64,000 nucleotides of DNA from Ascidiella aspersa (GCA_963924565.1 OZ004612.1:7068001-7132000); one strand, 5' to 3'; positions 728-63,401 are shown, numbered from the stretch's first letter. Notes: generated from the sequence alone by a model not told the origin. Translations and numbers: made by a program.

Positions 728-845
728 CTTTCACTTGAACTTTCCCGTTTTCTTCGATGACCACTGCTGCTTTCTTGGCTAACACCGAAGTCAATAAACA
801 AACCACAGCGTAAAACGTCAACCGACTTATCCAAAAATTTGTCAT
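728..845 (-). CDS. First coding exon (signal peptide) of a type-C CTLD adhesion GPCR; the rest of the gene lies left of the window (copy 0)
   Basis: ATG at 845; MTNFWISRLTFYAVVCLLTSVLAKKAAVVIEENGKVQVK-G; phase-1 donor AAG|GTCGGT. Same as exon 1 of copy 3 (42625-42742). The end is homologous to VIEVNDEVRMR-G of the type A/B exon 1. Confidence 0.75.
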
Positions 846-1282
846 TGTTTGCACTATACTCTCTCCTAAAAGTGATGCACACACGAAACTACAGTTGTAA
901 ATTAAAATTACTGCTTCTGGCTGGGCAAATTGCAATTAACGCTATTTATCCCGACCAACAATAAAACAAAGTCATAATAGAGCGATTGACAGAAATTACA
1001 AAGACTAAAATCGCTGCCCTTTTTATATTTTACAATAAATAAATATAATAAACAGAAAATGTAACTAAAAATGCGTTTAAATTAGTCAGTGGTTTTTGAA
1101 GTGTATTTCGCGACATACAAGTTTACCACGAGTGATTTAAAGTGTGCCACGAAAACATAATTGCTTCACAAATGCTGAAACACTCAGGCATGTGAAACTC
1201 CCGTTTAACAACTGTTGTCCAAGCCACCAAAATCTTGCCATTGGTATTTTCGTTTCTCTCTAAATATATTTTGTTCTGCAAA

Positions 1283-2050
1283 GTTGAAGTGATATGAGTC
1301 AACGACCTGAAATAAGTGCACTTAGGTCACTGGTTGAAAATGACTTAACCAGACTTAAGTACATTAGGAAAGCGGATTTGACTTGACTTAAGTCTTTTTA
1401 GACAAATGACTTGTCTTAGATTCAAGCAATTTTAAAAATAGTTTGTAAAATTTGGTTATTTTTTCACACAATGTCAGCTTTTAAAACAATTTTCTAGCTA
1501 AATGTTTATTTTTCGGTTATTGTTTATTTAAAACATTGTTTAGGACCGTGTTTCTAAAAGTGTCTGTTTACTTCTTGTTGGCGTGGAATAGTTTTAGGAG
1601 GTCCATGAAGGCCTGATTGAAACCTAAAATAATAATTTGAAATGTAATGACTTTTACAAAAGAAAAAAGATTAATTTAAAATCTGCTTTGGCTTCTCCTT
1701 AAAAGTATATTTAATTTGCTATTTGAGTCCGACCTGAAACAACAAGTCTACCTGTTTAATGACGTCATATTTGAAAACATTTTTGCCGACCCTGGTTCAA
1801 CAGAACCAAAAAGCAGTTTTAGAGTTCCCCGCTAAAAAAAACGTTTAAGCACCAAAGGGTTGTGATCAAACGATTGAACCAGTTTATTATAGTTTAATTT
1901 TTTATTTGAAATCAAATGATTTGATTTGGATTTGAGTTGTTGTGATGATAAGAATTTGGACAGGGACTTGATTTGCTATATTTCGCAAATGAATTTACTT
2001 AACTTGAATTATTTTTTGCAAATTAGTTGACTGAGACTTTTAACCACCTC
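1283..2050. repeat. Degenerate GACTT/TGACTTA-rich repeat relic, probably an old MITE (duplicate at ~43180-43940)
   Basis: Clusters of (A)TGACTT(G/A)ACTT-like motifs at both ends of the interval. Similar motif clusters at ~9835-9905, ~34915-34960 and ~38445-38490. Confidence 0.35.
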
Positions 2051-3212: not shown

Positions 3213-3218
3213 TTTATT
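3213..3218 (-). promoter_or_regulatory. Candidate polyadenylation signal (AATAAA on minus strand), ~1.3 kb after the stop codon
   Basis: TTTATT on +, retained in all five units. Weak evidence, since the flanks are homogenised and AT-rich. Confidence 0.25.
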
Positions 3219-4599
3219 GGTAAGACTTAAAAATCTTACACCTTAAAATAGCTTAAAGTTACAAACAGGCTAAAAACAACCTACAAATTATAGAGACTGA
3301 TAATATTTTAGCTTTAATTTTTTGTATTATTTTCGTTTGTAAGCATGAAACACTTTTGAGCGGGAAGCATATCAATACAAAGTGAAACACTTCGGGGAAA
3401 ATAACAACAATCAACGACAAAAAGTAAATATAATAAACATAGAAAAAGTCATCGAACCTATGATAGGATAGTGTAAGTGTCACGGGAATGCTTATACATA
3501 AAAAAGCATTGGCCCAACGTTTAAACGACCACATAGGAATCAACGAGCAGAATAAAAGAACAAAAAAAGAACAAAAATCAAATGAGTAATTACATTAGTT
3601 TTCATACAATATAACGGAATAACAACGAATAGGCAAGAAGAAAGTGAAAAGTGCCAATTTATCGTGCTATACAACTCAAGTTAAAAGACATGCTCCCAAT
3701 GCTATTATTTCAAAATTAGTCTTAGTTAACTCTGATATTTGGGCGTAACGCATATGCTATATAGCCGAACCGAAAACGCCCCTATTTTGCTCCGTGTGAT
3801 TTGAGCATTAAATTATCTGCGGTACATTTTAAAGAGGTACACAAAGAAATAATACAGTAATCGAAATTAACGAGCAATACTGCAATCAATATCCGTTGTA
3901 AAACAAAATGCACTGTAAAGAACAAAAGTGGACAAATGTAAAAATTAGGGCGAGTTACAACTAACACATTTATGAAGAAGCCAAATTAGAATACTATACG
4001 AAAATACTTCTTTTAATAAGAAATGCTTTAACCAGAAATGACCGCAATTCCTGGGTTACCAATGGGTCGCTATACTACAGAGGTAGCCTAATACAAAAAA
4101 TCATCACTTTAAAAAATGTAGACTGGAGTTTATGTACCATATAGCTCTAAATAAGCTTTACCGAGTTTCTTTATGTTACAGATAATGCTAAATGAAGTAT
4201 ATTATTTAACGTGTCTCTTTATTTGTCATATTGATTCACAAAATTATAACAACTATATAAAAAGTGGTATATTGGAAACAAAAGGTAGGATTTAAATCAC
4301 GCAATAGTTCCGGGTGAGCACATAGACACCAAAATGCTCCTTAAAATAACGAACTGAATAGCTGCGCTTTTATCCACCGGTTTGGCAACAGCCGATTTAT
4401 ACCATTGGAAACACGAATTGCCGGATATTGTCTATCGCGATCAACTTCCAACCTCACACCCAATTGTTAATATTTGCATTTAATTGTCTAGGCCTACTTG
4501 CTAAACTTAGAAGTCTTTATATTCTGCTGCCCTCTGTTTAGTGTTTTGCTTACGTTATCCGTCTTTCTTCCATCAGGCAGCCCTTTTATTTGGGCTATT

Positions 4600-5590
4600 T
4601 TTCTTTCGTTAGCATTTCTGTTTTCACTAGCCACCCTGTTTTCTAGGATCATCTTGCGTATGTTAGCCATCTTGATTTCGTGAGTCCTCTTGCTTTGTTG
4701 GAGTTCACTCTTGCTTTTCTGAGATGTGGTGATTTTTTGAGTCACCTTGTTTTCCAGAAGTGTTTTTTCATCGTTCAACACTTTTCTGTCGCCATTCTTC
4801 TTTTTTTCAAAGGCCACCAGGGTTTTCTGGGACATAATTCTGTCGTGGGCCATATCGTTTTGCTTGTCCCTCTTACTTCCATAAGCCGTCTGGCTTTCTT
4901 GGACAATCTTCCTTGTATGGGCCATCTTGCTTTCCTGAGTAATTGTTCCTCCTTCGATTATTCTGTTTTGCCGGGGACCACTATTGTCTTCCTGAGATGC
5001 AGTTCTTTTCCGAGTCATCTTGTTTCCGTGAAACCTCTTTATTTGGTCAGTCATTTTGCTCTTGTGAGCCATCTGAGTTTTCTGGTTGTCGTGAGTCACA
5101 TCTTCTTTCTGGTCATGCTGGTTTTCGTAGGACATCTTGCTTTCTTGTACAATCTTGTTTATGTGAGCCATCTTGCTTTCGTGGCTCATTTTTCTTTCGT
5201 GTGACTCCGTGGTTTCGCAAGCCACTTTTCGTTCGTTTACCATCCTGCTGTCGTGAGCCATTTTCCTTTCGTGCGACATATTACTTTTGTCAGCACTTTG
5301 AATTTCTTGAACTGCCTTGCTCACGTGAGCCTTATTACCTCCGTGAACTTTTTCGCTTCTCTGAAATGTTTTTCTCTTTTCCGCCATCTTGATTTCTTTG
5401 ACTGTCTTGCTTCCGTGAGCCGTCTGTCTTTTGTCAGAAACTTTTCGTACGTGAGCCGTTGTACTTCCGCGAGACATCTCGTTTTGCTGGTCAATCTTAC
5501 TTGCATAAGCCTTTCTGCTTTCGTGAGCCATCTTTCTTATATGATCCATATTGCTTTCCGACGATGCCTTGCTTTCCGTAACCATGTTGT
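4600..5590 (-). repeat. Degenerate 18-bp coding tandem repeat encoding (S/R)KMAH(E/D)-like hexapeptides in the receptor tail (present in all five copies)
   Basis: Recurring + strand unit CATCTTGCTTTCGTGAGC and variants; protein e.g. RKMAHESRKAYA, SHERKMAHDSRMVNERK, SHERKMSHESKMAHINK. Confidence 0.75.
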
Positions 5591-8500
5591 TTTCCTTGGT
5601 AGACTTTGAACCGAGGCTTTCTTTTGCCTTTCTATTTGACCTTGTAAATCGAAGTCGGTCAACAATCGCGTGCCGGACCTCACTGTTAAACACCGCGTAG
5701 ACCAGAAGCAAAAAGAATCCTTGCAGTCCGTTCACCACAGTCGAAAGATAAATAAACACGTTGGACGTTCCTAGAAAAATGACGTTGGGCACTGTTACTT
5801 AATTTTAAAGCAATTTACCGCTTCCCTATCAAATACTAGTGTGCTAAAATAAACAAGGAAAATAATGCATTGCATGGTATTATTGAACGACCAACCATAA
5901 AAATACGACAAATGTAATTCAAGGTTGAAAATTACCCTGAGGACACCAAGTAAGCAACCGTGTAAACTAAATATCGGGTCCGAAAGGTTTAACTAGATGC
6001 GAGGACAACCTTAAAATAAATGCTTTAAACAGACCAATCTAGTTCAAATCTAGGCCTATAGCGCGAAATTTACCAGCAAGGAAGAGTACAGCCCACGGAA
6101 CGCCAAACGCAGGAAGCAGCATAAGCATGGCTCGGAGTCCGGCTTTGACGTGGATCAGGTTGTTTCCCATCAGTGGATTGTTGTCCTCGCTACGTTGGGG
6201 CGACCGGCCTTAGCTTTTCCTCGGCTTTGCTCATTGCGTACACAAAGCAACTGACTTTGAGCAAGATGGCAAGATTTACGATTGCAATGGCAGCGAGGGG
6301 AATTATGACGCCGACCAGAAGGATTCCCGAATCTCGACTTAGCCAGCATTGAGCGTAATTGGCCGTTATATTCGGTTTAAAAGCCACCAGCGGTTCGTCC
6401 ATGTAGATGTCGTTGAAGAAATTGTAAACTGTTGTTGCGATCACCGCTGCACAGGGAAAGAGCCAACCGGATGCAAGAAGGCCGATCCTTACGCTTCTGG
6501 AGGAGCCGAGACGAAGAGCGAAGTCGGAAGTTTTTAGGAAGATGTTCACGCCCTCCACCAACATCCAGGCTCCTTAAGAGACAAGGTAAATTAGCAACAT
6601 TTGTTAATGGTACATTTTACGGTTTAAATGTGGTTGTCCACGCCTGACAAATGTTTAGTTTTTACCATACGTAACAACTTATACTTACTGTAAATAGTTT
6701 AACTGAATATTAGTAATCTATAAAGTTCATTTTATCTAAAGCTATGAGGTAAAACTAATTCAAATAATAAAATGGAAGACCCATAAATTAGATACGAAAC
6801 CAACGTTCAAAAAAGCGCAAAACGGAGCAGTTATTAAACAACCTATTTATTCTGCAATAAGCTATGTTTAACATAATGAAATTTACTAAACATTAAAGTT
6901 AAATTCAATTTATTTAAAAATTGCCAAATGATTTCAGGTGAAAAAACTTGCGTCACAGCCACAATTCCCCGATTCAACTGTCTGGGCGAATGGGTGTTAA
7001 TTGCAACATTTGCGTTATGTTCTAAATTGAGGTTTTCCTTCACCTGAACTCAGCATTGCGAAATGCTGCGCGACCGCCAACACCTGACAAGCAAGTTGGT
7101 CGTCCAAGGCAAAGTCGTGAACCAAGTTGCCCAAATGCAGCAGTAATAGGCAAGCGGCCAGATGTATCTGCACAACGGTTCGGCCGCTTTTGACCTTTCG
7201 TTTGGCCACAAGCAAAGCGATGATCGTCAGTACGAGTGAGAAAGAAGAAACGCAGCCGGTGACGTAACCAAGAATCTGTGTACAGTAAAATATTAGTACA
7301 AAAACAACTAATGGTCAACTCGTTCCTTTTGTGGTTGATCCACGCCAGTTCATTTCAATCAGAGGCATTTTAAGGTAAGCGGGGATTCGTTTGGCAGACC
7401 AAAATCTAAAAATTCATAAAATTCCTTAAATAGACATTTACATGCCTTATGCATATCACATGACAAAATTCAGTGATATAAAGTTTTGTAAAATTCTTTA
7501 CATTTCAGTGTTTAAAACCTGGGTCACTCCAAACCCGATGAAACTGCCTGGGGCCCTTAAAATGGCGTAGTAATATAGACAAGTTAAAATGGCGTACTAT
7601 TACTATCAATTGCGATTTGTGTTAAGCCGAAGCAGGCGGATATACGTTGGTCACTACGTCATTCCTCTGCGTTGCCAGTCTTGTATACCAGCCAATGTTC
7701 TTTTATTTCTTTTAACCGAGGCGTCAAACATTCTCGCTTCGTTTATTAAATCCAGCCTTATAGTGTGGACCTATATGACCGAGCTGTTTACATGTGTCGT
7801 CATATGCCATGCTTCTGTTTTCGTTTATTACTGCAACCTTTATCGGACCGCCCTAACAAATTCGAGCGCGGTAACTAACAAACAATCTCCTTCTAAATTA
7901 GGCGATTTGCACAATAAAACAGACTACAGCTATAACCTTATTGGCAAAGCTCCCGGCCCCGTTTTAATATTAAAATCGTTGCCAAAGTGGCTGATCAAAA
8001 TACGGTCGGTTTGAAGTTGTCCAAATGGGTTACGCTATTATGATTTGATGTAATTCTTGTTATTTTTTAAATTACTTATCGAATAAATCCAAATGCTCGT
8101 GTTTACCATGAAAATCAAAACTTACAGACAATTAGAGTAAATAATAACGGCAAGTGTTGTAATGCATATCCATTGCGGTAAATGCGTTTAAACCAATGCA
8201 AATTTTATTTCCGCATCATAAATAATTTATATTAAAGGTGCCCGAAACAATGTTACTGCTCCAACTCGATGAACAAAAAAACATTAAAGGCTACAATATT
8301 TCTTGGCTAAAATTTTAGGGCTCGAGATAATAAGGATATTGTTACTACAATAATATTAAAGCGAATTGTTACCACATGTTGGAAAATGTCACTTTAACCA
8401 AGTGGTGGACCATGGCGTAGGATATTGAGGGGGTCAATTACTTTAGGAATGACTTAACTTTTTCACGTGACGTCATAAAGCGCCTAATCTTTAAATAATA

Positions 8501-10202
8501 TTTTGCTGTCCAGCGAATTTACTATTTTTCGAAAATAACAGCATTTGTAGTCTAATTTAGTATAAACTTCAGTGGTTATGAATTTATACCAGGTAACATG
8601 ACATATAATATAACATCTTTGGGCTGAACTGATAACGGACAAAAGCCTAGTAAAAATGCATAGAAACTAATTATTTTGTAAAAACAGTTTATATTAACAT
8701 AATAAAAGTTTAAATATAGTTTGAAACGGATGCAAGGCCTTTTGGTTACCTGTATCCTCTCTTGCATATGTCTTAGCAGGAGTACCGTTTACATTTAGGC
8801 ATTACGCGGGTATCAGTTTTACCTTAGCTGGATACGGTATGACGACAGCTTCCACGGTAAGCATGACAGCAAAGATGGTGGCGTGGTTCGAAGCGCAGGC
8901 GACTTTTCCCTGCTCCATCCCGACCAGCGTCATTCCAGTAGCCTCAAAATCTCCCGTACTGGTGTTGTAGAACACGCAGCGAAGTTTGACGCTGCGCAGA
9001 AGTAGGCTTCCACTAGTGTTGCCTTTGTAGCTTTGCACCGAGTAGATTGACCTGATTATGTCAGTCATGTTGCTTGTCCGAACTTCGTAACTTAACTTAA
9101 ATGGTAAATGTTACGTCACAACATTGTTTGACAACAGCAACTTTAAAGTAGCACGGAGTTGTACAAAGAATTAATAAAACATATCATGCAGGACTTCGGC
9201 TTACTTAGGAAGCATAAAGAGAAGATCGATATTCAAAGTCAAATATAGTTATTTTAAGTATAGGCCTACTGTAGTTATTTGTGTCCCAGTTGTTGATGGG
9301 TGAAACAAGATAAAAAATAAATATATAATGTACAAAAATAAGGCACGAACATTACAACCTTTTTTAGTGCATAAAAAAATGAATTTTTAATTTCCCAACT
9401 ATTGATCATTATGATTTTTTTAATAGTATATCATTTTCATAAGGAGTAAAGTAAATTATAGTGGAATGGCCAACAGGCAGTGCATTTAAGCGAACGATTT
9501 AATTTAAGTGTACGTAAGTTACTGGTTTTAATTTAATTAACTTAACCTATAAGTCTTTTGGACAAAATCGCTCAACTTTACTAAACCCTTTCGGACAAAT
9601 AAATTCATTTCACTTAAGCGTGTTCTTTAATAATTAATTTTTGATACAATTTATTTAGTCTTACCGCAAAGTCTGTTAGTAATTATGCTTCATAACTACA
9701 TATTACGTTTTGTTATTCGCGAATTCAAACATCTTCCGGATCGGATAAATTTACCAATTATAATAATTTACCATTTTATTTCTACTTTTGTAAATGACAT
9801 GCCCAGCCTCTACTTGCTATAAAAATTACTTAGACTGAGCCTTGACTTCATGTGTTTAGTAAATGATTTGACTTTTAGTTGTTTTTCTGCAAATGATTTA
9901 ACTTTCAATTAAAAATAACTGGTTTGCAACACAGTAAAAATTTACTTAAATAAAAAAAAATCTGCATACCGTAACATTCCCCGTCAATTTTGCGGGTGTA
10001 ACTCCCAGTAGGGTTCCCATCAAAAAGTTGCCTTCAAGAGTTCCGTCTTCCTTCAAAGATTTGTTGGCAACCCATTGGTTGGTCGGTGGGGTAAAATTGA
10101 TCAATTCCAGTGCGACTCGCTTTGGTGTAATAAATGACGTCAGAGCTACGTCATCGAATTGGTAAGTGGTCGAGTTTCCTGGCTCGTGCATCAGGTATTC
10201 TA

Positions 10203-10261
10203 CTTTGGCGTCGTTTTCTGAACAAGGCTTGCCTTTGGTGTCGGTTTCTGAACAAGGCTTG
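10203..10261. repeat. 30-bp tandem duplication at the exon-5 splice acceptor (also in copies 2 and 4)
   Basis: CTTTGGCGTCGTTTTCTGAACAAGGCTTG / CTTTGGTGTCGGTTTCTGAACAAGGCTTG, period 30; single copy in copy 3 (~35309-35337). Confidence 0.85.
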
Positions 10262-10552
10262 TGCTTTAACAAAATGGGTTTAGTTCCTTGTGTTTAGTAA
10301 AAGAAGATAAAATTTCGGCAACGTGGACACAAACCAATATACGTTTGATTTCGTTAAGTCACCGAGAACATCATTTCACATTTTCGGATTTTTTGAGGTT
10401 GGTTCTAAGCACGATTTTTTTAGAATTCAAAATACTGTAGGACGGATAAAAAGACATGCTCATTTTTATTAAATTCGTGCTTTGCTCACTTAAAAAAGTT
10501 GAAAGGAATTGGGTCGCCAAATATTCGCTGTTAGCTACCCTTGGCATTTAGG

Positions 10553-11143
10553 CAGGGAGTCTAACCGGAACCGAAGTGGAACTTTATGAACCGGTTTTGG
10601 GTCAATTTTTTTCGAACCGTAACCGAACCTGTACCGTTTTTTAAACGACTTTAAGTAGCCGAAGCGGAACTGAACCAAATAATTTGAACGAACATGAACT
10701 TTAAACGAACCCGAACCTGAGCGGTTTGCTCCAGCATGACGTCACAACTTGTATTTTAAAGACTCAAATTATGCCATGTTTAAAATTTTATAAACAAATT
10801 TGAATATTGATTAAAAAACGTTGATTTTTTTTATTTTTTAGATATTTAAATAATGAGTTGCTGTTTTCTTAATACGTCACGTAACTTTAACTGAATGACT
10901 TACTATTCATAGATTATTCTCTACATTTGTTGACCTACATTTTTAGATTTAACGCAATTTATATAATATCCGAACCGGAACTTTATCAACCGGTTTTGAA
11001 ATAACGATGGTCGGACCGGAGCTGAACCGTAACTTTTGATTTGCTCCGAACCGAAACCGAAACTGAAACTGAACCATATTCCGAAAAAATCCTTAAACCC
11101 GAACCGAACCTGAACCGGAAAAGGCAAACGGTTCGACTCCCTG
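10553..11143. mobile_element. hAT-type MITE with internal GAACC/AACCG repeats, in intron 4 of copy 1
   Basis: TIRs CAGGGAGTCTAACCG ... CGGTTCGACTCCCTG; 8-bp flanks CATTTAGG / TATTTAGG (7/8 TSD). Confidence 0.85.
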
Positions 11144-14100
11144 TATTTAGGTCGTAGTCCCATCGAAAAGGAATGGTAGCCCATAATAAAATATATTTTA
11201 TGCACAGGCTATGATAAACGAATTTACACTGCTGGGCATTTAGATATTGACTTAGCCGAAACAAATTGATTTGGTGGCTTTAAGGTTAAGACTTTCTTAC
11301 AAATCGTAATTTGAATCGCCCGCAACTTGATTCAGTAATTACTCATTATGCTTCAGGGTAAGTAGACCAGTTTGTGTAAAAACAAACAAATTGATAAACT
11401 TTTTAAAGGTTCACTTTTAGTTTTCGCTTTTTAACCAATACTGATCTAACGCTGAACTTACCGAATTTAGAGCAGATGTCGTTTTGAGAATCATCGCTTT
11501 TAATGCGATAAAATGTTGCTGTAAATAAAAAGGTTGATTTAATATGATTTAAGTTTGCTAGATTTTGTGTAGTTGGATTTTTAAAAAGCAGGACATAGGC
11601 CTGTACACATTAATGATGTAACAATTTGTTGCATTTATATTATGCAATACGCTAACTTATACATTAAATTCATCTTATTGTTCTAAACTTTGATCTAAAT
11701 GCTTTTCAATATACTAGAGCCGTCGTCGCAATAGATATTGAATTATTTATTCTAAACTAAAAAAATAATTCTCGAAAAACACCACCAAAGCTCCCGAAAA
11801 AACGAAATCGCAAATATGGAAAATCAATACCAAACATTAGCATTATATCTTGGTAGAATATCTCTCCAATTTCGCAAAATCATTTATTTTTTTTAACTAG
11901 CGGGGGCGCGCGGCAAACAATGCTTCAGGGTATAAGCGTTGATGAAATTGTTTATAAGCCTGGTGGGTTAAAAATTACACTTACCATTGAAGTAACACAC
12001 ATAAGAGTTTTTTTCGTCCCCGTCTATGTTGTCCCACTTAGTTGAATCTCTCATCATAATCACGCATTTTTGATCTGGATCAGACGAAGGCTGACATGTA
12101 TTCCAACTGTCGTGATATGTAACGCTGCTTCCATCCGTCCAACGATAAGAATTTTTTTGACCTATATTTGTTTCAGAGCGTGCTCCTGCGAAGTTCAAAT
12201 TTATAAGAACAAAATTTAATTTCTAATTATATACTTCGTCAAACCATTATATAACCTGTGTGTAGCAGGACAGCAAGAGCCTAGTATGACGTTGTAGTGG
12301 AAAATACAGTATGGTGGTCGTATTTTGTTTTACAATAAGGTCTTAAAACCAAGTTACCAAAGTCGAAGAGGTTCAAAATTGGTCAGGGTGAACATTATTG
12401 TAGTTTAAATAAAAAAAAAATTTAGTGTCGACAATGTTTGTTTTTTTAATAAGTAAACGTCTACAAAAAGTACAACAGCCTTGAAGTTATTGCAGCTGTC
12501 TTAGGATGAATTGTGGTAAACCAGTCGTTTTATAATGTGGTCATAAGTGGTTCATATTGGGCACGAATGCTTTAATATGTTCTAACTGACTTCCTCATTT
12601 AATATTGAGCAATACCCGAAAAGCTAACACAAACAATGCAGCACAAAAACAAACCACTAGTTTTGTTAGAATTACCGCCTGATTTGTTAAAAAATATATT
12701 CAAAGTAAAACATTTCTAAAAAAACTGTGACTTTTAAATAAGGGTTACTCGGCTACTCGCCCATTGATATCATTACAAAATTGTGTCGCCGACGGCACTA
12801 GTTCTCGTGATTAAATTTATTGGAAGTGGTTTTAAACCTAGGTAAGATTTTCAAAAATTTGATAAAAATTGCGGAAACACTACGAAGAAATGGCTCATAT
12901 TGATGAAATTGTAAATTATTGTTGCTATTTTCTTGGTTGTGATGTCTTGCTTATTACCAATCTACTTAAGAAAGTTGAGTTGACAAAATTTTGCTATTAT
13001 ACTTTAAGTTTGGTGTTTGGGTTGCCGCCTAAAATGTTAATAAACACTGTTTAAGCAAAATAAAGCCGTTTTACACCTCTTCTGTATATTGAAAATTTGT
13101 TCACCTGAGTATAGATATTTATGTGAGATCACAAACTTTCTTACCGATCCACATGTCGACACCAGGATTGTATTTTCTACCAATACAAGAAACGAGTTCG
13201 TTTTCGTGTTCGTCTTCGATTTTAGCCAGTTGGCCTGCTTTGTTAGAGCATATATATTTGGCGTTATTAAATATTTTTCGACTGTTTTGCTTTTTCCCGA
13301 AAATTCCATATATCTTTACGCTAGTGCCATCTAAAATAAATAGAAATATATGTCTATATATATCAAATTCAATTATAAAAAATATCTAAGTCAATTATAC
13401 ATTTTGTCATTCCTACTGAGAATCTATTCTTGGAAAGCACAACCCAAAAACAAATTATGTCCATATTAAGATTCAGTATTATTTTCTTTATTTGAGTACA
13501 AAAGTACAAAATAAAAATTATTGCTGTGCATAACATACCTGTCAGTTCCAGTTTGCTTGCGATATCCAGGTCTTTAAAGCAAGATTTATATGCATTTCGC
13601 TGACCAGGACCATTTAAACCTACAAACATCCATTGCTTTATTCGCAACAAAGTCTGGACTCGTCTCAACAGATTTACGAGTGGTAAAATCATTTACGGGA
13701 GCAAAAGATAAGAACTAATTCTGCTTTTCTTACAATTAGCTCTGAGAAAGCATTCCTCAATTTTATTCAGTGGTTTGTTATAACAAGGCCTTAACAATTC
13801 AAAAACCATCTTTCGCGTGCTCTTTATACTTTGCGTTTTGCGGCCGGGTTTTAGCACAGTAGAAAATATAGTTATACCATCACAATTGCAATAAGACGTT
13901 TTACCGTTTAAAAATTTTTCTTCACACCTTGAATCCATTTTTACCCGTTGTACAACTTACCTCTCATCCGCACTTCATCGTTCACTTCGATGACCATTCT
14001 TTGCCTGAAAGCTGTTAGTTGGTTAGACGCCAGATGAGAAAACAAGCAAAAGACGACAAAAGAAAACTGCCGCAATCCTTTCCGAAAACCAGCCATGTGT

Positions 14101-17100: not shown

Positions 17101-17229
17101 AGCTGCGCTTTTATCGCACCGGTTTGACAACAGCTGTTTTATTCCATTGGAAACACGAATTGCCGGATATTGTCTATCGCGATCAACTTTCAACCTCAGA
17201 CGCAATTGTTAATATTCGCATTCAATTGT

Positions 17230-26200: not shown

Positions 26201-26605
26201 TCATTTACGGGAGCAAAAAATAAGAACTAATTCTACTTTTCTTACAATTAGCTCTGAGAAAGCATTCCTCAATTTTATTCAGTGATTTGTTATAAGAAGG
26301 CCTTAACAATTCAAAAAACAACTTTCGCGTGCTCTTTATACTTTACGTTTTGCGACCGGTTTTTAGCACCGTAGAAAGTAGTTATAACATCACAATTGCA
26401 AAAAAAGTTTTACCGTTTAAAAAGTTTTCTTCACACCTTGAATCCATTTTGTTCCGTTGTACAACTTACCTCTCACCCGCACTTTTTCGTTCACTTCGAT
26501 GACCATTCTTTGCCTGAAAGCTGTTAGTTGGTTAGACGACAGATGAGAAAACAAGCAAAAGACGACAAAAGAAAACTGCCGCAATCCTTTCCGAAAACCA
26601 GCCAT
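17230..26605 (-). CDS. Adhesion GPCR copy 2 (type-B CTLD + GAIN/GPS + 7TM + tail), ~1046 aa, apparently intact
   Basis: Exons 26470-26605, 25694-25873, 24521-24718, 24190-24246, 22680-~22957, 21534-21806, 19793-20024, 18824-19321, 17230-18518. Phases 1,1,1,1,0,0,1,1; total 3141 nt, in frame. CTLD WIG/WTD motifs, GPS H-A-T-IFAVML, WMLVEG, CWL, LPALGIPW, NGLQGFF. Confidence 0.88.
23263..23845. mobile_element. Same-site copy of the GAACC-rich hAT MITE in intron 4 of copy 2
   Basis: Same TIRs and CATTTAGG/TATTTAGG flanks as 10553-11143. Confidence 0.85.
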
Positions 26606-49300: not shown

Positions 49301-52300
49301 TCAGTGCTATAAAGTTTTGTAAAATTCTTTACATTTCAGTGTTTAAAACCTGGGTCACTCCAAACCCGATGAAACTGCCTGGGGCCCTTAAAATGGCATA
49401 GTAATATAGACAAATTAAAATGGCGTACTATTACTATCAATTGCGATTTGTGTTAAGCCGAAGCAGGCGGATATACGTTGGTCACTACGTCATTCCTCTG
49501 CGTTGCCAGTATTGTAAACCAGCCAATGTTCTTTTATTTCTTTTAATCGAGGCGTCAAACATTCTCGCTTCGTTTGTTAAATCCAGCCTTATAGTGTGGA
49601 CCTATATGACCGAGCTGTTTACATGTGTCGTCATATGCCATGCTTCTGTTTTCCTTTATTACTGCAACCTTTATCGGACCGCACTAACAAATTCGAGCGC
49701 GTTAACTAACAAACAATCTCCTTCTAAATTAGGCGATTTGCACAACAAAACAGACTACAGCTATACCTTATTGGCAAAGCTCCCGGCCCCGTTTTAATAT
49801 TAAAATCGTTGCCAAAGTGGCTGATCAAAATACGGTGGGTTTGAAGTTGTCCAAATGGGTTACGCTATTATGATTTGATGTAATTATTGTTATTTTGAAA
49901 TATAGGCCTACTGGTCGAATAAATCCAAATGCTCGTGTTTACCATGAAAATCAAAACTTACAGACAATTAGAGTAAATAATAACGGCAAGTGCTGTAATG
50001 CATATCCATTGCGATAAATGCGTTTAAACCAATGTAAATTTTATTTTCGCAGCATAAATAATTTATATTAAAGGTGCCCGAAACAATGTTACTGCCCCAA
50101 CTCGATGTACAAAAAACATTAAAGGCTACAATATTTCTTGGCTAGAATTTTAGGGCTCGAGATAATAAGGATATTGTTACTACAATAATATTAAAGCGAA
50201 TTGTTACCACATGTTGGAAAATGTCACTTAGACCCATGGGTGAATCATGGTAGGCTATTGAGGGGTCAACTTTTTTAGGAATGATGTAACTTTTTCACGT
50301 GACGTCATAAAGCACCTAATCTTTAAAACACATTTTCTTGTCTAGCGAATTCAATATTTTTCGAATTACAACGTTTGTAGTTTAATTTAGTATAAACTTC
50401 AGTGTTTATGAATTCACAAGTATAACATCTTTGGGCTGAATTAATAACAGACAAAAGCGAAGTAAAATGCATGGAAGCTGAGTATTTTTGTAAAAAAAGT
50501 TTACATTTACATAATAAAAGTTTATATAGATTGAAAAGGAAGCATGGTCTTATGATTTTCTGTATCCTCCCTTGCATACATGTCTCAGTACCTACACTAA
50601 GCAAAAGTGTACCTTTTCCAATCGGACACTACTCGGAGATCAGGTTTACCTTAGCTGGATACGGTATGACGACAGCTTCCACGGTTAGCATGACAGCAAA
50701 GATGGTGGCGTGGTTCGAAGCGCAGGCGACTTTTCCCTGCTCCATCCCGACCAGCGTCATTCCAGTAGCCTCAAAGTCACCCGTGCTGGTGTTGTAGAAC
50801 ACGCAGCGAAGTTTGGCACTTCGCAGAATTAAGGTTCCAGTCTCGTTGCCTTTGTAGCTTTTCACCGAGTAGATTGAGTTGATTATGTCAGTCAAGTTGC
50901 TTGTCCGAACTTCGTAACTTAACTTAAAGGGTAAATGTTAAGTCACAACATTGTTTGACAACAGCAACTTTAAAGTATAGCACGGAGTCGTACAAAAAAT
51001 TAATAAAACATATCATGCAGGACTTCGGCTTCTTTAGGAAGCATAAAGAGAAGATCGATATTCAAAGTCAAATATAGTTATTTTAAGTATAGGCCTACTG
51101 TAGTTATTTGTGTCCCAGTTGTTGATGGGAAAAACAAGATAAAAAATAATATAATGTACAAAAATAAGGCACGAACATTACAACCTTTTTTAGTGCATAA
51201 AAAAAATGAATTTTTAATTTCCCAACTATTGATTATTATGGTTTTTTTAATAGTATATCATTTTCATAAGGAGTAAAGTAAATTATAGTGGAATGGCCAA
51301 CAGGCAGTGCATTTAAGTGATCGATTTAATTTAAGTGTACGTAAGTTACTGGTTTTAATTTAATTAACTTAACCTATAAGTCTTTTGGACAAAATCGCTT
51401 AACTTTACTAAACCCTTTCGGACAAATAAATTCATTTCACATAAGCGTGTTCTTTAATAATTAATTTTTGATACAATTTATTTAGTCTTACCGCAAAGTC
51501 TGTTAGTAATTATGCTTGATAACTACATATTACGTTTTGTTATTCGCGAATTCAAACATCTTTCGGATCGGATAAGTTTACCAATTATAACAATTTACCA
51601 TTTTGTTTATACTTTTGTAAATGACATGCCCAGCCTCTACTTGCTATAAAAATTACTTAGATGAGTCTTGACTTCATGTGTTTGGTAAATGATTTGACTT
51701 TTAGTTGTTTTTCTGCAAATGATTTAACTTTCAATTAAAAATGACTGGTTTGCAACACAGTAAAAATTTACTTAAATAAAAAAAAAACCGCATACCGTAA
51801 CATTTCCCGTCAATTTTGCGGGTGTAACTCCCAGTAGGGTTCCCATCAAAAAGTTGCCTTCAAGAGTTCCGTCTTCCTTCAAAGATTTGTTGGCAACCCA
51901 TTGGTTGGTCGGTGGGGTGAAATTGATCAATTCCAGTGCCACCGCCTTTGGTGTAATAAATGACGTCAGAGCTACGTCATCGAATTGGTAAGTGGTCGAG
52001 TTTCCTGGCTCGTGCATCAGGTATTCTACTTTGGCGTCGTTTTCTGAACAAGGCTTGCCTTTGGTGTCGGTTTCTGAACAAGGCTTGTGCTTTAACAAAA
52101 TGGGTTTAGTTCCTTGTGTTTAGTAAAAGAAGATAAAATTTCGGCAACGTGGACACAAACCAATATACGTTTGATTTGGTTAAGTCACCGGGATCATCAT
52201 TTCACATTTTCGGATTTTTTGAGGTTGGTTCTAAGCACGATTTTTTTAGAATTCAAAATACTGTAGGACGGATAAAAAGACATGCTCATTTTTATTAAAT

Positions 52301-55300
52301 TCGTGCTTTGCTCACTTAAAAAAGTTGAAAGGAATTGGGTCACCAAATATTCGCTGTTAGCTACCCTTGGCATTTAGGCAGGGAGTCTAACCGGAACCGA
52401 AGTGGAACTTTATGAACCGGTTTTGGGTCAATTTTTTTTGAACCGTAACCGAACCTGTACCGTTTTTTAAACGACGATTTAAGTAGCCGAAGCGGAACTG
52501 AACCAAATAATTTGAACGAACATGAACTTTAAACGAACCCTAACCTGAGCGGTTTGCTCCAGCATGACGTCACAACTTGTATTTTAAAGACTCAAATTAT
52601 GCCATGTTTAAAATTTTATAAACAAATTTGAATATTGATTGAAAAACGTTGATTTTTTTTATTTTTTAGATATTTAAATAATGAGTTGCTGTTTTCTTAA
52701 TACGTCACGTAACTTTAACTGAATGACTTACTATTCATAGATTATTCTCTACATTTGTTGACCTACATTTTTAGATTGAACGCAATTTATATAATATCCG
52801 AACCGGAACTTTATCAACCGGTTTTGAAATAACGATGGTCGGACCGGAGCTGAACCGTAACTTTTGATTTGCTCCGAACCGAAACCGAAACTGAAATTGA
52901 ACCATATTCCGAAAAAATCCTTAAACCCGAACCGAACCTGAACCGGAAAAGGCAAACGGTTCGACTCCCTGTATTTAGGTCGTAGTCCCATCGAAAAGGA
53001 ATGGTAGCCCATAATAAAATATATTTTATGCACAGGCTATGATAAACGAATTTACGCTGCTGGGCATTTAGATATTGACTTAGCCGAAACAAATTGGTTT
53101 GGTGGCTTTAAGGTTAAGACTTTCTTGTAAATCGTAATTTGAATCGCCCGCAACTTGATTCAGTAATTACTCATTATGCTTCAGGGTAAGTAGATCAGTT
53201 TGTGTAAAAACAAACAAATTGATAAACTTTTTAAAGGTTCACTTTTAGTTTTCGCTTTTTAACCAATACTGATCTAACGCTGAACTTACCGAATTTAGAG
53301 CAGATGTCGTTTTGAGAATCATCGCTTTTAATGCGATAAAATGTTGCTGTAAATAAAAAGGTTGATTTAATATGATTTAAGTTTGCTAGATTTTGTGTAG
53401 TTGGATTTTTAATAAACAGGACATAGTCCTGTACACATTAATGATGTAACAATTTGTTGCATTTATATTATGCAATACGCTAACTTATACTTTAAATTCA
53501 TCTTATTGTTCTAAACTTTGATCTAAATGCTTTTCAATATACTAGAGCCGTCGTCGCAATAGATAATAAAAAAAAATGTTTTTAACTTATTACACTGGTG
53601 GGTTAAAAATTACACTTACCATTGAAGAAACACACAAAAGGGTTTGCTTTGTCCTCGATGTTGTCCCACTTAGTTGAATTTTTCATCATAATGACATATT
53701 TTTGATCTTGAAGATCAGACGGCTGACTTGAATGCCAACTGTCGTGATATGTAACGCTGCTTTCATCCGTCCAAAGATAAGAAATATTTTGACCTATATT
53801 TTCTTTAGCGCTCGCGCCTGCGAAGTGCAAATTTATAAGAACAAAATTCAATTTTTAATTAAATACTACGCCAAACCATTATATAATGTGTAGCAGGACA
53901 ATAAGGACCTGGTATGACGTTGTAATGGCAAATACAGTATGGTGGTGGTATTTTGTTTTACAATAAGGTCTTAAAACCAAGTTACCAAAGTCGAAGAGGT
54001 TCAAAATTGGTCGGGGTGAACATTATTGGAGTTTAAATCAAACAAAAATGAAGAAAAATTTAGTGTCGACAATGTTTTTTTTTTAAATAAGTAAACGCCT
54101 ACAAAAAGTACAACAGCCTCGAAGTTATTGCAGCTGTAGGACACGGTCTTGAATATAAATTGTGGTAAACCAGTCGTTTAATAATGTGGTCATAAGTGGT
54201 TCATATTGGGCACGAATGCTTTAATCTATTCTAATTGATTTTCTCATTCAATATTGAGCAATACCCGAAAAGCTAACACAAACAATGCAGCACAAAAACA
54301 AACCACTATAGTTTTGTTAGAATTACCGCCTGATTTGTTAAAAAATATATTCAAAGTAAAACATTTCTAAAAAAACTGTGACTTTTAGATTGGCTACTCG
54401 TCCATTGATATCATTACAAAATTGTGTCGCCGACTGCACTAGTTCTCGTGATTAAATTTATTGGAAGTGGTTTTAAACCTAGGTAAGATTTTCACAAAAT
54501 TGATAAAAATTGCGGAAGTAATGCGAATAAATGGCTCATATTAATGAAATTGTAAATCATGGATGCTATTGTCTTGTTTGTGATGATTTCCTTGATTATT
54601 ACCAATCTACTTAAGAAAGTTGAGTTGACAAAATTTCGCTATTATATACTTGAAGTTTGGTGTTTGGGTTGCCGCCTAAAATGTTAATAAACACTGTTTA
54701 AGCAAAATAAAGCCGTTTTAACACCACTTCTGTATATTGAAAATTTGTTCACCTGAGTAGTCATTTATTTGTGACCACAAATTTTCTTACCTATCCACAT
54801 GTCGAAATTGTGTTGTTTACGGATGCAGTCAACGAGTGCGTTTTCGTTTTCGTCTTCGATTTTAGCTAGTTGGCCTGCTTTGTTAGAGCATTCCTTTCGG
54901 GCTTCCGAAAATTTTTTTTGATTTTTTTTCTTTTTCCCGAAAAGTCCATATATCTTTACTCTAGTGCCATCTAGAATGAAAAAAAATATCAAATTCAAAT
55001 CCTATACCCTTTGTCGTTCCTATACTGAGAATCGATTCTGCAAAAGCACATCCCAAAAACAAATTATGTCCAATTTAAGATTCAGTATTATTTTCTGTAT
55101 TGGAGTACAAAAGTACAAAATAAAAATTATTGGTGTGGATAACATACCTGTTAGTCCCAGTTTGCTTGCGATACCCAGGTCTTTAAAGCAATATTCATAT
55201 ACACTTCGACGATCAGTACCATTTAAACCTATAAACATACATTGCTTTATTCGCAAAAAAGTCTGGTCTCGTCCCAACAGGTTTACGAGGGGTAAAATCA

Positions 55301-55702
55301 TTTACGGGAGCAAAAAATAAGAACTAATTCTACTTTTCTTACAATTAGCTCTGAGAAAGCATTCCTCTATTTTATTCAGTGATTTGTTATAAGAAGGCCT
55401 TAACAATTCAAAAAACATCTTTCGCGTGCTCTTTATACTTTGCGTTTTGCGACCGGTTTTTAGCACCGTAGAAAGTAGTTATAACATCACAATTGCAAAA
55501 AACGTTTTACCGTTTAAAAAGTTTTCTTCACACCTTGAATCCATTTTGTTCCGTTGTACAACTTACCTCTCACCCGCACTTTTTCGTTCACTTCGATAAC
55601 CATTCTTTGCCTGAAAGCTGTTAGTTGGTTAGACGCCAGATGAGAAAACAAGCAAAAGACGACAAAAGAAAACTGCCGCAATCCTTTCCGAAGACCAGCC
55701 AT
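46329..55702 (-). CDS. Adhesion GPCR copy 4 (type-B CTLD), ~1041 aa, apparently intact
   Basis: Exons 55567-55702, 54791-54970, 53620-53817, 53290-53346, 51796-~52073, 50650-50922, 48876-49107, 47906-48403, 46329-47602; total 3126 nt, in frame. Confidence 0.88.
52379..52971. mobile_element. Same-site copy of the GAACC-rich hAT MITE in intron 4 of copy 4
   Basis: Same TIRs and flanks as 10553-11143. Confidence 0.85.
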
Positions 55703-58700: not shown

Positions 58701-58925
58701 ATCGCACCGGTTTGACAACAGCCGTTTTATTCCATTGGAAACACGAATTGCCAGATATTGTCTATCGCGATCAACTTTCAACCTCAGACGCAATTGTTAA
58801 TATTCGCATTCAATTGTTCACTTGCTATACTTAGAAGTCTTTATATTCTGCTGCCCTCCGTTTAGTGTTTTGCTTACGTTATCCGTCTTTCTTCCTTCAG
58901 ACAGCCCTTTTATTTGGGCTATTTT

Positions 58926-61900
58926 TCATTCGTTAGCAGTTCTGTTTTCGCTAGCCATCCTGTTTTCTAGGATCATCTTGCTGATGTTAGCCATCTTGAT
59001 TTCGTGATTCCTCTTGCTTTGTTGAAGTTCACTCTTGCTTTTCTGAGATGTGGTGATTTTTTGAGTCACCTTGTTTTCCAGAAGTGTTTTTTCATCGTTC
59101 AACACTTTTCTGTCGCCATTCTTCTTTTTTTCAAAGGCCACCAGGCTTTTCTGGGACATAATTCTGTCGTGGGCCGTATCGTTTTGCTTGTCCCTCTTTC
59201 TTCCATAAGCCGTCTGGCTTTCTTGGACAATCTTCCTTGTATGGGCCATCTTGCTTTCCTGAGTAATTGTTCCTTCTTCGATTATTCTGTTTCGCCGGGA
59301 ACCACTATTGGCTTCCTGAGATGCAGTTCTTTTCCGAGTCATCTTGTTTCCGTGAAACCTCTTTATTTGGTCAGTCATTTTGCTCTTGTGAGCCATCTGA
59401 GTTTTCTGGTTGTCGTGAGTCACATCTTCTTTCTGGTCATGCTGGTTTTCGTAGGACATCTTGCTTTCTTGTACAATCTTGTTTATGTGAGCCATCTTGC
59501 TTTCGTGAGCCATTTTTCTTTCGTGTGACTCCGTGGTTTCGTGAGTCACTTTTCGTTCGTGTACCATCCTGCTGTTGTGAGCCATTTTCCTTTCGTGCGA
59601 CATATTACTTTTGTCAGCACTTTGAATTTCTTGAACTACCTTGCTCACGTGAGCCTTATTACGTCCGTGAAATATTTCGCTTCTCTGTGATGTATTTCTC
59701 TGTTCCGCCATCTTGATTTCTTTGACTGTCTTGCTTCCGTGAGCCGTCTGTCTTTTGTCAGAAACTTTTCGTACGTGAGCCGTTGTACTTCCGCGAGACA
59801 TCTCGTTTTGCTGGTCAATCTTACTTGCATAAGCCTTTCTGCTTTCGTGAGCCATCTTTCTTATAGGATCCATATTGCTTTCCGACGATGCCTTGCTTTC
59901 CGTAACCATGTTGTTTTCCTTGGTAGACTTTGAACCGAGGCTTTCTTTTGCCTTTCTATTTGACCTTGTAAATCGAAGTCGGTCAACAATCGCGTGCCGG
60001 ACCTCACTGTTAAACACCGCGTAGACCAGAAGCAAAAAGAATCCTTGCAGTCCGTTCACCACAGTCGAAAGATAAATAAACACGTTGGACGTTCCTAGAA
60101 AAATGACGTTGGGCACTGTTACTTAATTTTAAGGCAATTTACCGCTTCCCTATCGAATACTAGTGTGCTAAAATAAACAAGAAAAATAATCCATTGCATG
60201 GTATTAATGAACGACCAACCATAAAAATACGACAAATGTAATTCAAGGTTGAAAATTACCATGAGGACACCAAGTAAGGAACCGTGTAAACTATAGGTAT
60301 CGGGTCCGAAAGGCTTAACTAGATGCGAGGACAACCTTAAAATAAATGCTTTAAACAGACCAAACTAGTTCAAATCTAGGCCTATAGCGCGAAATTTACC
60401 AGCAAGGAAGAGTACAGCCCACGGAACGCCAAGCGCAGGAAGCAGCATAAGCATGGCTCGGAGTCCGGCTTTGACGTGGATCAGGTTGTTTCCCATCAGT
60501 GGATTGTTGTCCTCGCTACGTTGGGGCATCGGCCTTAGCTTTTCCTCGGCTTTGCTCATTGCGTACACAAAGCAACTGACTTTGAGCAAGATGGCAAGAT
60601 TTACGATTGCAATGGAAGCGAGGGGAATTATGACGCCGACCAGAAGGATTCCCGAATCTCGACTTAGCCAGCATTGAGCATAATTGGCCGTTATATTCGG
60701 TTTAAAAGCCACCAGCAGTTCGTCCATGTAGATGTCGTTGAGGAAACCGTAAACTGTTGTTGCGATCACCGCTGCACAGGGAAAGAGCCAACCGGATGCA
60801 AGAAGGCCGATCCTTACGCTTCTGGAGGAGCCGAGACGAAGAGCGAAGTCGGAAGTTTTTAGGAAGATGTTCACGCCCTCCACCAACATCCAGGCTCCTT
60901 AAGGGACAAGGTATATTAGCATCATTTGTTAATGATGCATTTTACGGTTTAAATGTGGTTGTCCACGCCTGACAAATGTTTAGTTTTTACCATACGTAAC
61001 AACTTATATACTTACTGTAAATAGTTTAACTGAATATTAGTAATCTATAAAGTTCATTTTATCTAAAGCTATGAGGTAAAACTAATTCAAATAATAAAAT
61101 GGAAGACCCATAAATTAGATACGAAACAAACGTTCAAAAAAGCGCAAAACGGAGCAGTTATTAAACAACTTATTTATTCTGCAATAAGCTATGTTTAACA
61201 TAATGAAATGTACTAAACCTTAAATTTAAATTCAATTTATTTAAAAATTGCCACATGATTTCAGGTAAAAAAAACTTACAGCCATAATTCCCCGATTCAA
61301 CTGTCTGGGCGAATGGGTGTTAATTGCAACATTTGCGTTATGTTATAAAATTCAGGTTTTCCTTCACCTGAACTCAGCATTGCAAAATGCTGTGCGACCG
61401 CCAACGCCTGACAAGCAAGTTGGTCGTCCAAGGCAAAGTCGTGAAGCAAGTTGCCCAAATGCAGCAGCAATAGGCAAGCGGCCAGATGTATCTGCACAAC
61501 GGTTCGGCCGCTTTTGACCTTTCGTTTGGCCACAAGCAAAGCGATGATCGTCAGTACGAGTGAGAAAGAAGAAACGCAGCCGGTGACGTAACCAAGAATC
61601 TGTGTACAGTAAAATATTAGTACAAAAACAACTAATGGTCAACTCGTTCCTTTTGTGGTTGATCCACGCCAGTTCATTTCAATCAGAGACATTTTAAGGT
61701 AAGCGGGGATTAGTTTGGCAGACCAAAATCTAAAAATTCATAAAATTCCTTAAATAGACATTTACATGCCTTATGCATATCACATGACAAAATTCAGTGA
61801 TATAAAGTTTTTATATAAACATTTTAAGGTTTCAAACCTTGGTCACTCAAAACGCGAAGCAACATGCGCGGAAACCCTTAAAATGGCGTAAAAGTATAGA

Positions 61901-63401
61901 CAAATTAAAATGGCGTACTATTATTTACCAATTGCGATTTGTGTTAGGCCGAACCCGGCGGATATACGTTTCTCACCACGTCATTCCCTGTGGTGCCAAT
62001 CTTGTAAACCAGCCAATGTTCTTTTATTTCTTTTAACTGAGGCGTCAAACATTCTCGCTTCGTTTATTAAATCCAGCCTTATAGTGTGGGCGTATATGTT
62101 ACCGAGATGTTTACATGTTTCGTCATATGCCATGCTGCTGTTTTTTTATTACTATAACCTTTGTCGGACCGCCGTGACGAATTCGAACGCAGTAACGAAA
62201 TCTTATTCTAAATTAGGCGATTTGCACAACAAAACAGACTACAGCCATACCTTATTGGCAAAGCTCCCGGCCCCGTTTTAAACTTAAAATCGTTGCCAAA
62301 GTGTCTGTTAAAATTATGGTTGGTTTGAAGTTGTCCAAATGGTTTACGCTATTATGATTTGATGTAATTCTTGTTATTTTTTAAATTACTTATCGAATAA
62401 ATCCAAATGCTCGTGTTTGCCATCAAAATCAAAACTTACAGACAATTAGAGTAAATAATAACGGTAAGTGTTGTAATGCATATCTATTGCGATAAATGCG
62501 TTTAAACCAATGTAAAATTTTATTTTCGCAGAATAAATAATTTATATCAAAGATGCCCGAAACAATGTTACTGCTCCAATTCGATGTGCAAAAAACATTA
62601 AAGGCTACAATATTTCTTGGCTAGAATTTTAGGGCTCGAGATAATAAGGATATTGTTACTACAATAATATTAAAGCGAATTGTTACCACATGTTGGAAAA
62701 TGTCACTTAGACCCATGGGTGAACCATGGTAGGCTATTGAGGGGTCAACTTTTTTAGGAATGATGTAACTTTTTCACGTGACGTCTTAAAGCACCTAATC
62801 TTTAAATAACATTTTGTTGTCCAGCGAATTCAATATTTTTTGAATAACAGCGTTTGTAGTTTAATTTAGTATAAACTTCAGTGTTTATGAATTCACAAGT
62901 ATAACATCTTTGGGCTGAATTAATAACAGACAAAAGCGAAGTAAAATGCATGGAAGCTGAGTATTTTTGTAAAAAAAGTTTACATTTACATAATAAAAGT
63001 TTATATAGATTGAAAAGGAAGCATGGTCTTATGATTTTCTGTATCCTCCCGTGCATATATGTCTCAGTACTTACACTAAGCAAAAGTGCACCTGTTCCAA
63101 TCGGACACTACTCGGAGATCAGTTTTACCTTAGCTGGATACGGTATGACGACAGCTTCCACGGTTAGCATGACAGCAAAGATGGTGGCGTGGTTCGAAGC
63201 GCAGGCGACTTTTCCCTGCTCCATCCCGACCAGCGTCATTCCAGTAGCCTCAAAGTCGCCCGTACTGGTGTTGTAGAACACGCAGCGAAGTTTGGCACTT
63301 CGCAGAATTAAGGTTCCAGTCTCGTTGCCTTTGTAGCTTTTCACCGAGTAGATTGAGTTGATTATGTCAGTCATGTTGCTTGTCCGAACTTCGTAACTTA
63401 A
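58926..63401 (-). CDS. Adhesion GPCR copy 5, 3' part (exons 6-9); 5' exons lie beyond the window; tail shortened by a premature stop
   Basis: Exons 63129-63401 (GPS), 61368-61599, 60400-60897, 58926-60094. AGA>TGA at 58926-58928; the stop used by the paralogs is still present at 58818-58820. Confidence 0.82.

Follow-up and report, generated by a model that had tools for sequence, protein, structure and literature searches.

Adhesion G-protein-coupled receptors (GPCRs) with Lectin C-type N-terminal domains were reported in amphioxus by Nordstrom et al. (2008), and this combination was then thought to be unique to amphioxus among GPCRs (PMC2246102). In Ciona, Kamesh et al. (2008) described adhesion GPCRs that are lineage-specific, lack clear vertebrate orthologs and have short ectodomains, 21 of 30 carrying a GPCR proteolysis site (GPS) domain only (PMC2396169). 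Here we analysed a window, one stretch of 64,000 nucleotides of the ascidian Ascidiella aspersa (C6:7068001-7132000 in an assembly of 308 Mb and 75 contigs, to which all genome-wide counts below refer), containing tandem genes predicted to encode adhesion GPCRs headed by a C-type lectin-like domain (CTLD). The window is probably the right-hand half of a ten-gene array, a lineage-specific tunicate adhesion-GPCR family in which the 5' sensor exons escaped the homogenisation of the 3' signalling exons.

The array genes share with the amphioxus receptors the C-type lectin domain, the GPS and a family-B seven-transmembrane (7TM) region in an invertebrate chordate, a likeness that does not imply orthology; the amphioxus paper only lists the domain and describes no tandem array, sensor types or concerted evolution (PMC2246102). 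Like the Ciona genes they are expanded in a tunicate, have no clear vertebrate orthologs and encode short ectodomains, but they bear a CTLD head and form a recently homogenised array. Among 41 ascidian relatives, three carry Lectin_C, two of which were identified as Styela clava XP_039251382 and Clavelina lepadiformis CAK8676912 / XP_076802372, both annotated as uncharacterised. These proteins have the same Pfam architecture, and their 7TM region is 33-37% identical to exon 8 of the array genes; their CTLDs show no detectable similarity to the CTLD exons of any of the three array types A, B and C defined below (phmmer E>0.01), and their stalks are much longer, with the GPS at residues about 470-730 as against about 300 in the array proteins. 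The general plan of the latrophilins (ADGRL) and other vertebrate adhesion GPCRs resembles that of the array genes, with a head of carbohydrate-binding type followed by GAIN/GPS, a tethered agonist and the 7TM, and the vertebrate Stachel core TxFAVLM is kept as TIFAVML. They differ in that the latrophilin lectin has a rhamnose-binding (Gal_lectin) fold, whereas the array head is a CTLD, and in that the vertebrate GAIN spans about 320 residues with two disulfides and an HL↓T site, whereas the array proteins have only about 175 residues between the CTLD and the predicted cleavage site, have lost one disulfide and carry H-A↓T (arrows mark cleavage). The initial annotation, made from the sequence alone, had suggested an undescribed family. 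This holds for the family in this array and not for the combination of Lectin_C, GPS and 7tm_2, which is already predicted in S. clava and C. lepadiformis and reported in amphioxus; the array is an undescribed tunicate family of that architecture.

Layout of the array

Self-comparison of the window revealed a head-to-tail tandem repeat with start-to-start spacings of 12.7, 12.5, 16.6 and 12.5 kb, in which a block of about 5.5 kb is common to all five window copies at 93.5-96.8% identity. Every long conserved open stretch is on the minus strand. With a GC content of 33-43% the window is AT-rich; it contains no N and holds five complete constant modules together with exon 1 of a sixth gene. After sequence flanking the window on both sides had been added, genome-wide mapping of the exons gave a complete array of ten units (g1 to g10) spanning C6:7.001-7.136 Mb, whose sensor types run C A A B C / A B C B A. 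The final five units, g6 to g10, are copies 1 to 5 of the window; g10 was typed as A from CTLD exons read just beyond the right edge, and the body of g5 (copy 0) lies to the left at C6:7055591-7064651. The mapping thus supplied the genome-wide count proposed in the initial annotation, ten units plus one diverged left-hand paralog, and the self-comparison bore out what had been seen within the window: head-to-tail copies with nearly identical GPS, 7TM, tail and introns, copy 1 being of type A, copies 2 and 4 of type B, and copy 3 of type C with an exon 1 matching that of copy 0 (Table 1).

Whole units measure 12.5-12.7 kb in type A, 12.5 kb in type B and 16.6-16.9 kb in type C. They are 96-99.9% identical within a type and about 94-95% identical between A and B, and C units can be aligned to A or B units across only about 7 kb, at about 90%. 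Each of the units g2, g4 and g5 has a nearly identical counterpart (g6, g7 and g8, respectively), indicating a very recent duplication of a three- or four-unit block. The first intron of type C is about 3.8 kb long (38788-42624 in copy 3, also seen in 1-2912) versus 0.6 kb in types A and B, and this explains why the units of 16.6 kb are 4 kb longer than the others; it contains several short stretches resembling open reading frames, with a recurrent GPR..CRPLLY motif, and these probably represent a repeat of the short interspersed element type.

Constant and variable halves of the units

The gene model, inferred from reading frames, splice signals and conservation between copies, comprises nine exons (E1 to E9) per unit: the signal peptide, two CTLD exons, a mini-exon of 19 amino acids, the stalk, the GPS, and three 7TM exons that include a tail of about 380 amino acids. 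Copy 2 (g7) serves as the reference (Table 1). All introns are in phase 1 except the two phase-0 introns flanking E6. AG and GT are present at every exon in all ten copies, the sole exception being the E5 acceptor in type C, which does not have the AG modelled for E5 and whose real acceptor must lie slightly further 5'.

Between the GPS exon and a point 1.6 kb beyond the stop codon, segment distance matrices gave inter-copy distances of 0-4.5% with no grouping by sensor type. E1-E4 fall into three strict types, with distances of at most 1.8% within types and 8% between A and B, and type C is unalignable with either. From E5 onward the types are mixed, the A copies g2 and g6 lying 1.2-1.4% from the B copies g4 and g7; the distance of g2 and g6 to the C copies g5 and g8 is 1.6% in E9, and in E7-E8 the C copy g1 is 4.2% from these two C copies. 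Such disagreement between the trees of different segments indicates recombination or gene conversion. Synonymous divergence (dS) between type C and types A/B is above 1 in E1-E3, 0.5 in E4, 0.35-0.41 in E5 and 0.02-0.13 in E6-E9, a gradient that places the main homogenisation boundary in intron 5; identity rises a second time in intron 6. The proposed division into a variable ectodomain and a constant signalling part was therefore recovered, the signalling half being constant including its introns and the sensor half variable.

Types A and B differ mainly within an island that covers the CTLD exons (Table 1). Fixed A/B differences reach 14-16% in the CTLD exons of the island and 5-8% in its introns, as against 0.1-0.4% outside it (exon versus intron, Fisher p=1e-6). 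In pairwise comparisons of A with B, CTLD differences are 0.17 at nonsynonymous and 0.19 at synonymous sites, compared with 0.07-0.08 in the island introns (p=1e-5 and p=0.005, respectively). The CTLD exons are thus 2-2.5 times more diverged than the adjoining introns, and the excess holds in a comparison with local non-coding sequence that had been set in advance.

The two halves also differ in the selection acting on them. The ratio of nonsynonymous to synonymous divergence (dN/dS, omega) is 0.1-0.4 in E5-E8, where the within-type ratio of nonsynonymous to synonymous changes is 46.5:40.5 (p=2e-6 against neutrality), demonstrating clear purifying selection on the stalk and 7TM exons. For the CTLD exons, A-B comparisons gave dN and dS of about 0.2 each (omega about 1) and comparisons of C with A/B gave omega 0.23-0.56; the within-type ratio is 19:3, significantly different from that of the 7TM exons (p=0.006) but not from the neutral expectation (p=0.22). 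The tail yielded dN/dS of 0.6-0.97. We read these values as a constrained and homogenised signalling body joined to a sensor under relaxed constraint or diversifying selection.

The combination of variable head and constant body could instead be a neutral by-product, in which a small number of unequal crossovers or conversions, perhaps just one, replaced the 3' halves of three old paralogs, which were then amplified, with no selection for sensor diversity. The initial description of the sensors as diversified is weakened, there being just three types in ten genes; CTLD omega never exceeds 1, the within-type changes are not significantly above the neutral expectation, and the segment-wise incongruence shows recombination to be frequent in the array anyway. 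However, were there one neutral tract boundary, exons would not be spared while the introns between them were homogenised, and the excess of the island CTLD exons over introns is found at both site classes; nor does the genome contain an outside donor of CTLD exons. We therefore regard the neutral account as possible, though on the unlikely side. The excess of exons over introns would be best explained by conversion erasing intron differences and selection keeping those in exons.

Table 1. Features of the array, given as window positions
Feature	Position	Strand	Evidence or remarks
E1 of g5 (copy 0), signal peptide, type C	728..845	-	Protein-identical to copy 3 exon 1; GT donor
g6 (copy 1, type A)	4497..14096	-	E9 4497-5770, E8 6074-6572, E7 7044-7275, E6 8823-9095, E5 9970-10217, E4 11462-11518, E3 11985-12185, E2 13145-13330, E1 13961-14096; AG/GT at each exon
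g6 E8 lesion: +1 insertion in third intracellular loop after TM5, then premature stop	6190..6204 (near 6202)	-	
Homogenised constant block of g7: 3' flank, E9, E8, E7, most of intron 6	15620..21140	-	93.5-96.8% identity among copies
Constant-block equivalents in other window units	2880-8393, 28102-33189, 44802-50228, 57294-62707	-	
g7 (copy 2, type B), intact reference model, about 1036 codons	17233..26605	-	Open frames, splice phases, Pfam matches
g7 E9: TM7 and basic His/Met/Lys-rich tail of about 380 residues, degenerate 18-nucleotide repeat	17233-18518	-	
g7 E8: TM3-TM6	18824-19321	-	Pfam 7tm_2 E=9.6e-12, profile positions 93-222
g7 E7: TM1 to start of TM3	19793-20024	-	Pfam 7tm_2 E=1e-7, profile positions 6-90
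g7 E6: GPS motif, H-A↓T site, then tethered-agonist-like TIFAVML	21534-21806	-	Pfam GPS E=1.5e-6
g7 E5: N-glycan-rich stalk; acceptor uncertain, may be 30-60 nucleotides further 5'	22680-22927	-	
High-copy interspersed repeat in intron 4 of A/B units	23150..23950	unspecified	DNA-run word depth 30,000-215,000 versus about 200-400 beside it
g7 E4: 19-codon mini-exon, phase 1-1	24190-24246	-	Kept in left-hand paralog; AG/GT in all copies
A-versus-B divergence island, end of E1 to just before E4, 2.2 kb	24300..26470 (g7 coordinates)	-	160 of 168 fixed A/B differences
g7 E3: CTLD second half (QPS ... WDN ... C)	24521-24718	-	CTLDs of mannose receptor 2 (Endo180) family in PDB, E=0.004
g7 E2: CTLD first half, ends in WIG motif	25694-25873	-	Pfam Lectin_C E=1e-7; splice sites
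g7 E1: start codon, signal peptide, first CTLD strand; phase-1 donor	26470-26605	-	Read directly; conserved in all A/B copies
g8 (copy 3, type C)	29704..42742	-	E9 29704-30977, E8 31283-31780, E7 32252-32483, E6 33963-34235, E5 35075-35322, E4 35523-35579, E3 36073-36276, E2 38614-38787, E1 42625-42742; Pfam Lectin_C on both CTLD exons
g9 (copy 4, type B), intact	46332..55702	-	E9 46332-47602, E8 47906-48403, E7 48876-49107, E6 50650-50922, E5 51796-52043, E4 53290-53346, E3 53620-53817, E2 54791-54970, E1 55567-55702
g10 (copy 5, type A), 3' part	58821..64000	-	E9 58821-60094, E8 60400-60897, E7 61368-61599, E6 63129-63401; E5-E1 just right of window

Predicted receptor

Domain and homology searches were run on single exons, and the per-exon scores are below what would be expected of whole domains. 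Pfam found Lectin_C, GPS and 7tm_2 in the predicted exons, confirming the combination of a CTLD with an adhesion-GPCR body. Lectin_C matched E2 of type B (E=1e-7) and both E2 (E=3.9e-7) and E3 (E=0.012) of type C. The CTLD keeps the WIG motif and the cysteines of the outer disulfide, C1 in E2 and C4 (the final ..VC..) in E3. Its second disulfide is missing, the C2 position being Tyr in types B and C and Cys in A only, and C3 being absent in all types. In type C, QPD..NE..WNN aligns with EPN..NE..WND of DC-SIGNR with one ligand Asp replaced by Asn, and a near-canonical galactose-type site is predicted. In types A and B, QPS..QK..WDN aligns with QPD..EN..WQN of a mannose receptor 2 CTLD, several ligands having been lost. 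The glycan recognition that had been suggested for the family is weakened, since the calcium and sugar motif is near-intact only in type C, A and B having QPS..WDN.

In the signalling half, the GPS exon E6 directly precedes the TM1 exon, to which it is joined by phase-0 sites. The GPS still has its His and the nucleophilic Thr, and it is followed by a canonical Stachel core, TIFAVML. Searches of 1.8 billion representative proteins with E8 gave best matches at 38-40% identity, the named ones being all ascidian adhesion GPCRs (Clavelina, Phallusia, Styela and Ciona); PDB searches with E8 alone and with E6 alone gave no matches. A profile built from the 41 ascidian relatives matched the solved structures of ADGRD1, ADGRL3, ADGRG2, ADGRG6 and ADGRE5 about equally well (E=1e-78 to 1e-54). 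Since several vertebrate adhesion-GPCR structures are matched by the relatives' profile, the array genes are, as judged from sequence, a bona fide adhesion-GPCR lineage with no single clear vertebrate counterpart. The tail is probably long, basic and disordered.

For E1, an open reading frame starting MILPL (25926-26204) was also considered as the signal-peptide exon and was dropped for the one listed in Table 1, because a genuine signal peptide and a phase-1 GT donor are found in the latter, whose last residues are homologous to those of type-C exon 1. A contig of DNA run X2 across type-B E2 (25619-25940) differs from the window at 7 of 322 positions, which may represent allelic variation or another copy in a second individual; contigs of run X1 are nearly identical to the assembly.

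Integrity, transcription and assembly of the copies

Several observations weigh against the reading of the array as a receptor family whose sensors escaped homogenisation. CTLD omega is about 1 and not above it, so that positive selection is not demonstrated, and Ca-dependent sugar binding by types A and B appears doubtful from their motifs. The GPS keeps only the first and third of four cysteines, both of its Trp residues are replaced, and Ala occupies P1 (H-A↓T). The stalk exon E5 was unrecognisable as GAIN, with an hhalign probability of 0.5% against the profile of the ascidian relatives and no PDB match. In addition, five of the ten copies are damaged. Copies g2 and g6 are frameshifted before TM6: E8 of g6 measures 499 instead of the normal 498 nucleotides, with CCGAT-GCCCC aligned to CCGGTCGCCCC in the pairwise comparison, and g2, which lies outside the window, carries the same +1 insertion; the site has no homopolymer run. 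Nonsense codons in g4 and g10 fall about 35 codons short of the end of the tail (in E9 of g10 at 58926-58928, 36 codons short), and the tail of g1 is truncated. Finally, no RNA reads were found on the exons of copy 2 (19950-25940) in the single run X4 (2026), of which about 6% was sampled and whose tissue is unknown. The only part of 19950-25940 with RNA reads was the interspersed repeat in intron 4, and most of these reads continue into unlike sequence; DNA runs of the same organism span the whole interval.

The damaged copies and the missing exon reads, together with the near-neutral tail, would fit a silent, decaying cluster of recently duplicated pseudogenes without present function. Against this, the frames of g3, g5, g7, g8 and g9 are fully open across all nine exons, AG/GT sites are retained in ten of ten copies apart from the shifted E5 acceptor of type C, and E5-E8 are under purifying selection among the copies. 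The nonsense codons of g4 and g10 remove just the last residues of a poorly constrained tail, and one RNA sample of the kind described cannot show silence. We consider a pseudogene cluster improbable.

Part of the copy number could also be an artefact of assembly, through repeat expansion or misplaced haplotypes that produced near-identical 42-kb blocks. The 99.9-100% identity of g4-g5 to g7-g8 over 29 kb counts in its favour and likewise against our reading; the near-identity of g2 to g6, shared frameshift included, also favours an artefact. However, the blocks are not simple copies of each other, since one has the extra unit g3 and 0.1-0.4% of sites differ, and tunicate haplotypes are expected to differ by more than 0.1%. 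Summed word depth in DNA run X1 was about 110-150 over B-only exons, about 210-270 over introns shared only by A and B, and about 300-700 over regions common to all types; this scaling, roughly proportional to the assembled copy numbers, supports the assembly weakly, word depth not being the same as copy number. An assembly artefact seems improbable.

Genomic neighbourhood

Directly to the left of the array, at C6:6984296-6991083, lies a diverged CTLD-bearing paralog whose exons are laid out as in the array genes (CTLD, mini-exon, stalk, GPS, 7TM). E4 and E5-E9 are also conserved in it. Its CTLD, stalk and GPS exons match those of the array at 38-41% amino acid identity, a value that rises to 70% for the TM1 exon and to 82% for the TM3-6 exon. 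Further to the left, at C6:6675460-6978414, at least 18 adhesion-GPCR TM3-6 exons occur on both strands with identities of 22-40%, so that the array and the left-hand exons together make up a megacluster of about 460 kb. A genome-wide search found no closer relative of the array-type CTLD and stalk exons elsewhere in the genome, the stalk being confined to the array and the adjoining paralog.

Of the CTLD candidates in the genome, at least 528 in number, 150 were scored as Lectin_C matches, and most of these fall into a giant cluster of C-type lectin exons at C2:5.87-7.55 Mb. Adhesion-GPCR 7TM exons are found nearby at C2:7.55-7.83 Mb, including the closest 7TM outside C6 (C2:7810469, 46% identity). 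Mitochondrial COX1 (C75:23317-24654) contains in-frame TGA codons, as the ascidian mitochondrial code predicts, and its best public protein match reaches only 77% identity.

Discussion

The most probable account of the array is one of old paralogs and young copies. Three old paralogs, A, B and C, would have been amplified as a higher-order repeat by recent segmental duplication, and recombination or gene conversion would keep the 3' half nearly uniform across copies, beginning with the GPS exon and extending 1.6 kb beyond the stop codon. The CTLD-bearing 5' half appears to have escaped this homogenisation, and the CTLD exons with their close vicinity are all that still separates A from B, a pattern as would be expected under selection preserving different sensors. 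The predicted product is a protein of about 1036 amino acids with a signal peptide, one divergent CTLD, a short glycosylated stalk, a degenerate GPS, a Stachel-like TIFAVML, a secretin-family 7TM and a tail. Binding of a ligand to the CTLD, possibly a glycan for type C, would alter how far the tethered agonist is exposed, and the 7TM shared by all copies would then signal through one G-protein pathway.

Comparable arrangements are known from the primate red/green opsins, the Ly49/KIR receptors of natural killer cells and the EGF-TM7 receptors EMR2/CD97. In these tandem genes, conversion homogenises introns and signalling parts while the exons that determine ligand or spectrum differ; they belong to protein families different from that of the array genes. 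The pattern described here is textbook concerted evolution with retained differences in ligand-binding exons, and it is unusually clear because the copies are so young.

A further-reaching proposal is that the array and the megacluster of about 460 kb to its left form a germline-encoded recognition system, in which selection keeps the CTLD types distinct and conversion ties them all to a single signalling module with its tail; different cues, whether glycan, microbial or self/non-self, would thereby converge on one pathway. Read-through splicing between units could add combinatorial heads; it is conceivable because the introns of the sensor exons are all in phase 1 and the units lie about 3 kb apart on one strand, and if it occurred, the sensors of the frameshifted copies could still be used. 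We put this proposal forward as a speculative and improbable one, and an immune or allorecognition role of the array, raised already in the initial annotation, is pure conjecture.

Adhesion GPCRs are mostly orphan receptors, and the diversification of their ectodomains is known mainly from domain lists. The array offers a clean natural experiment in this respect: ten very young copies with one signalling body and three heads kept apart, separated by sharp and measurable boundaries. If the genes prove silent, the array would simply add another young segmental duplication to a genome in which CTLDs and adhesion GPCRs abound. If they are expressed, they would provide a tractable test of lectin-headed GPCRs as pattern or glycan sensors in tunicates, animals without adaptive immunity of which some species have allorecognition, and they would reveal how a receptor gene is divided up between selection and gene conversion.

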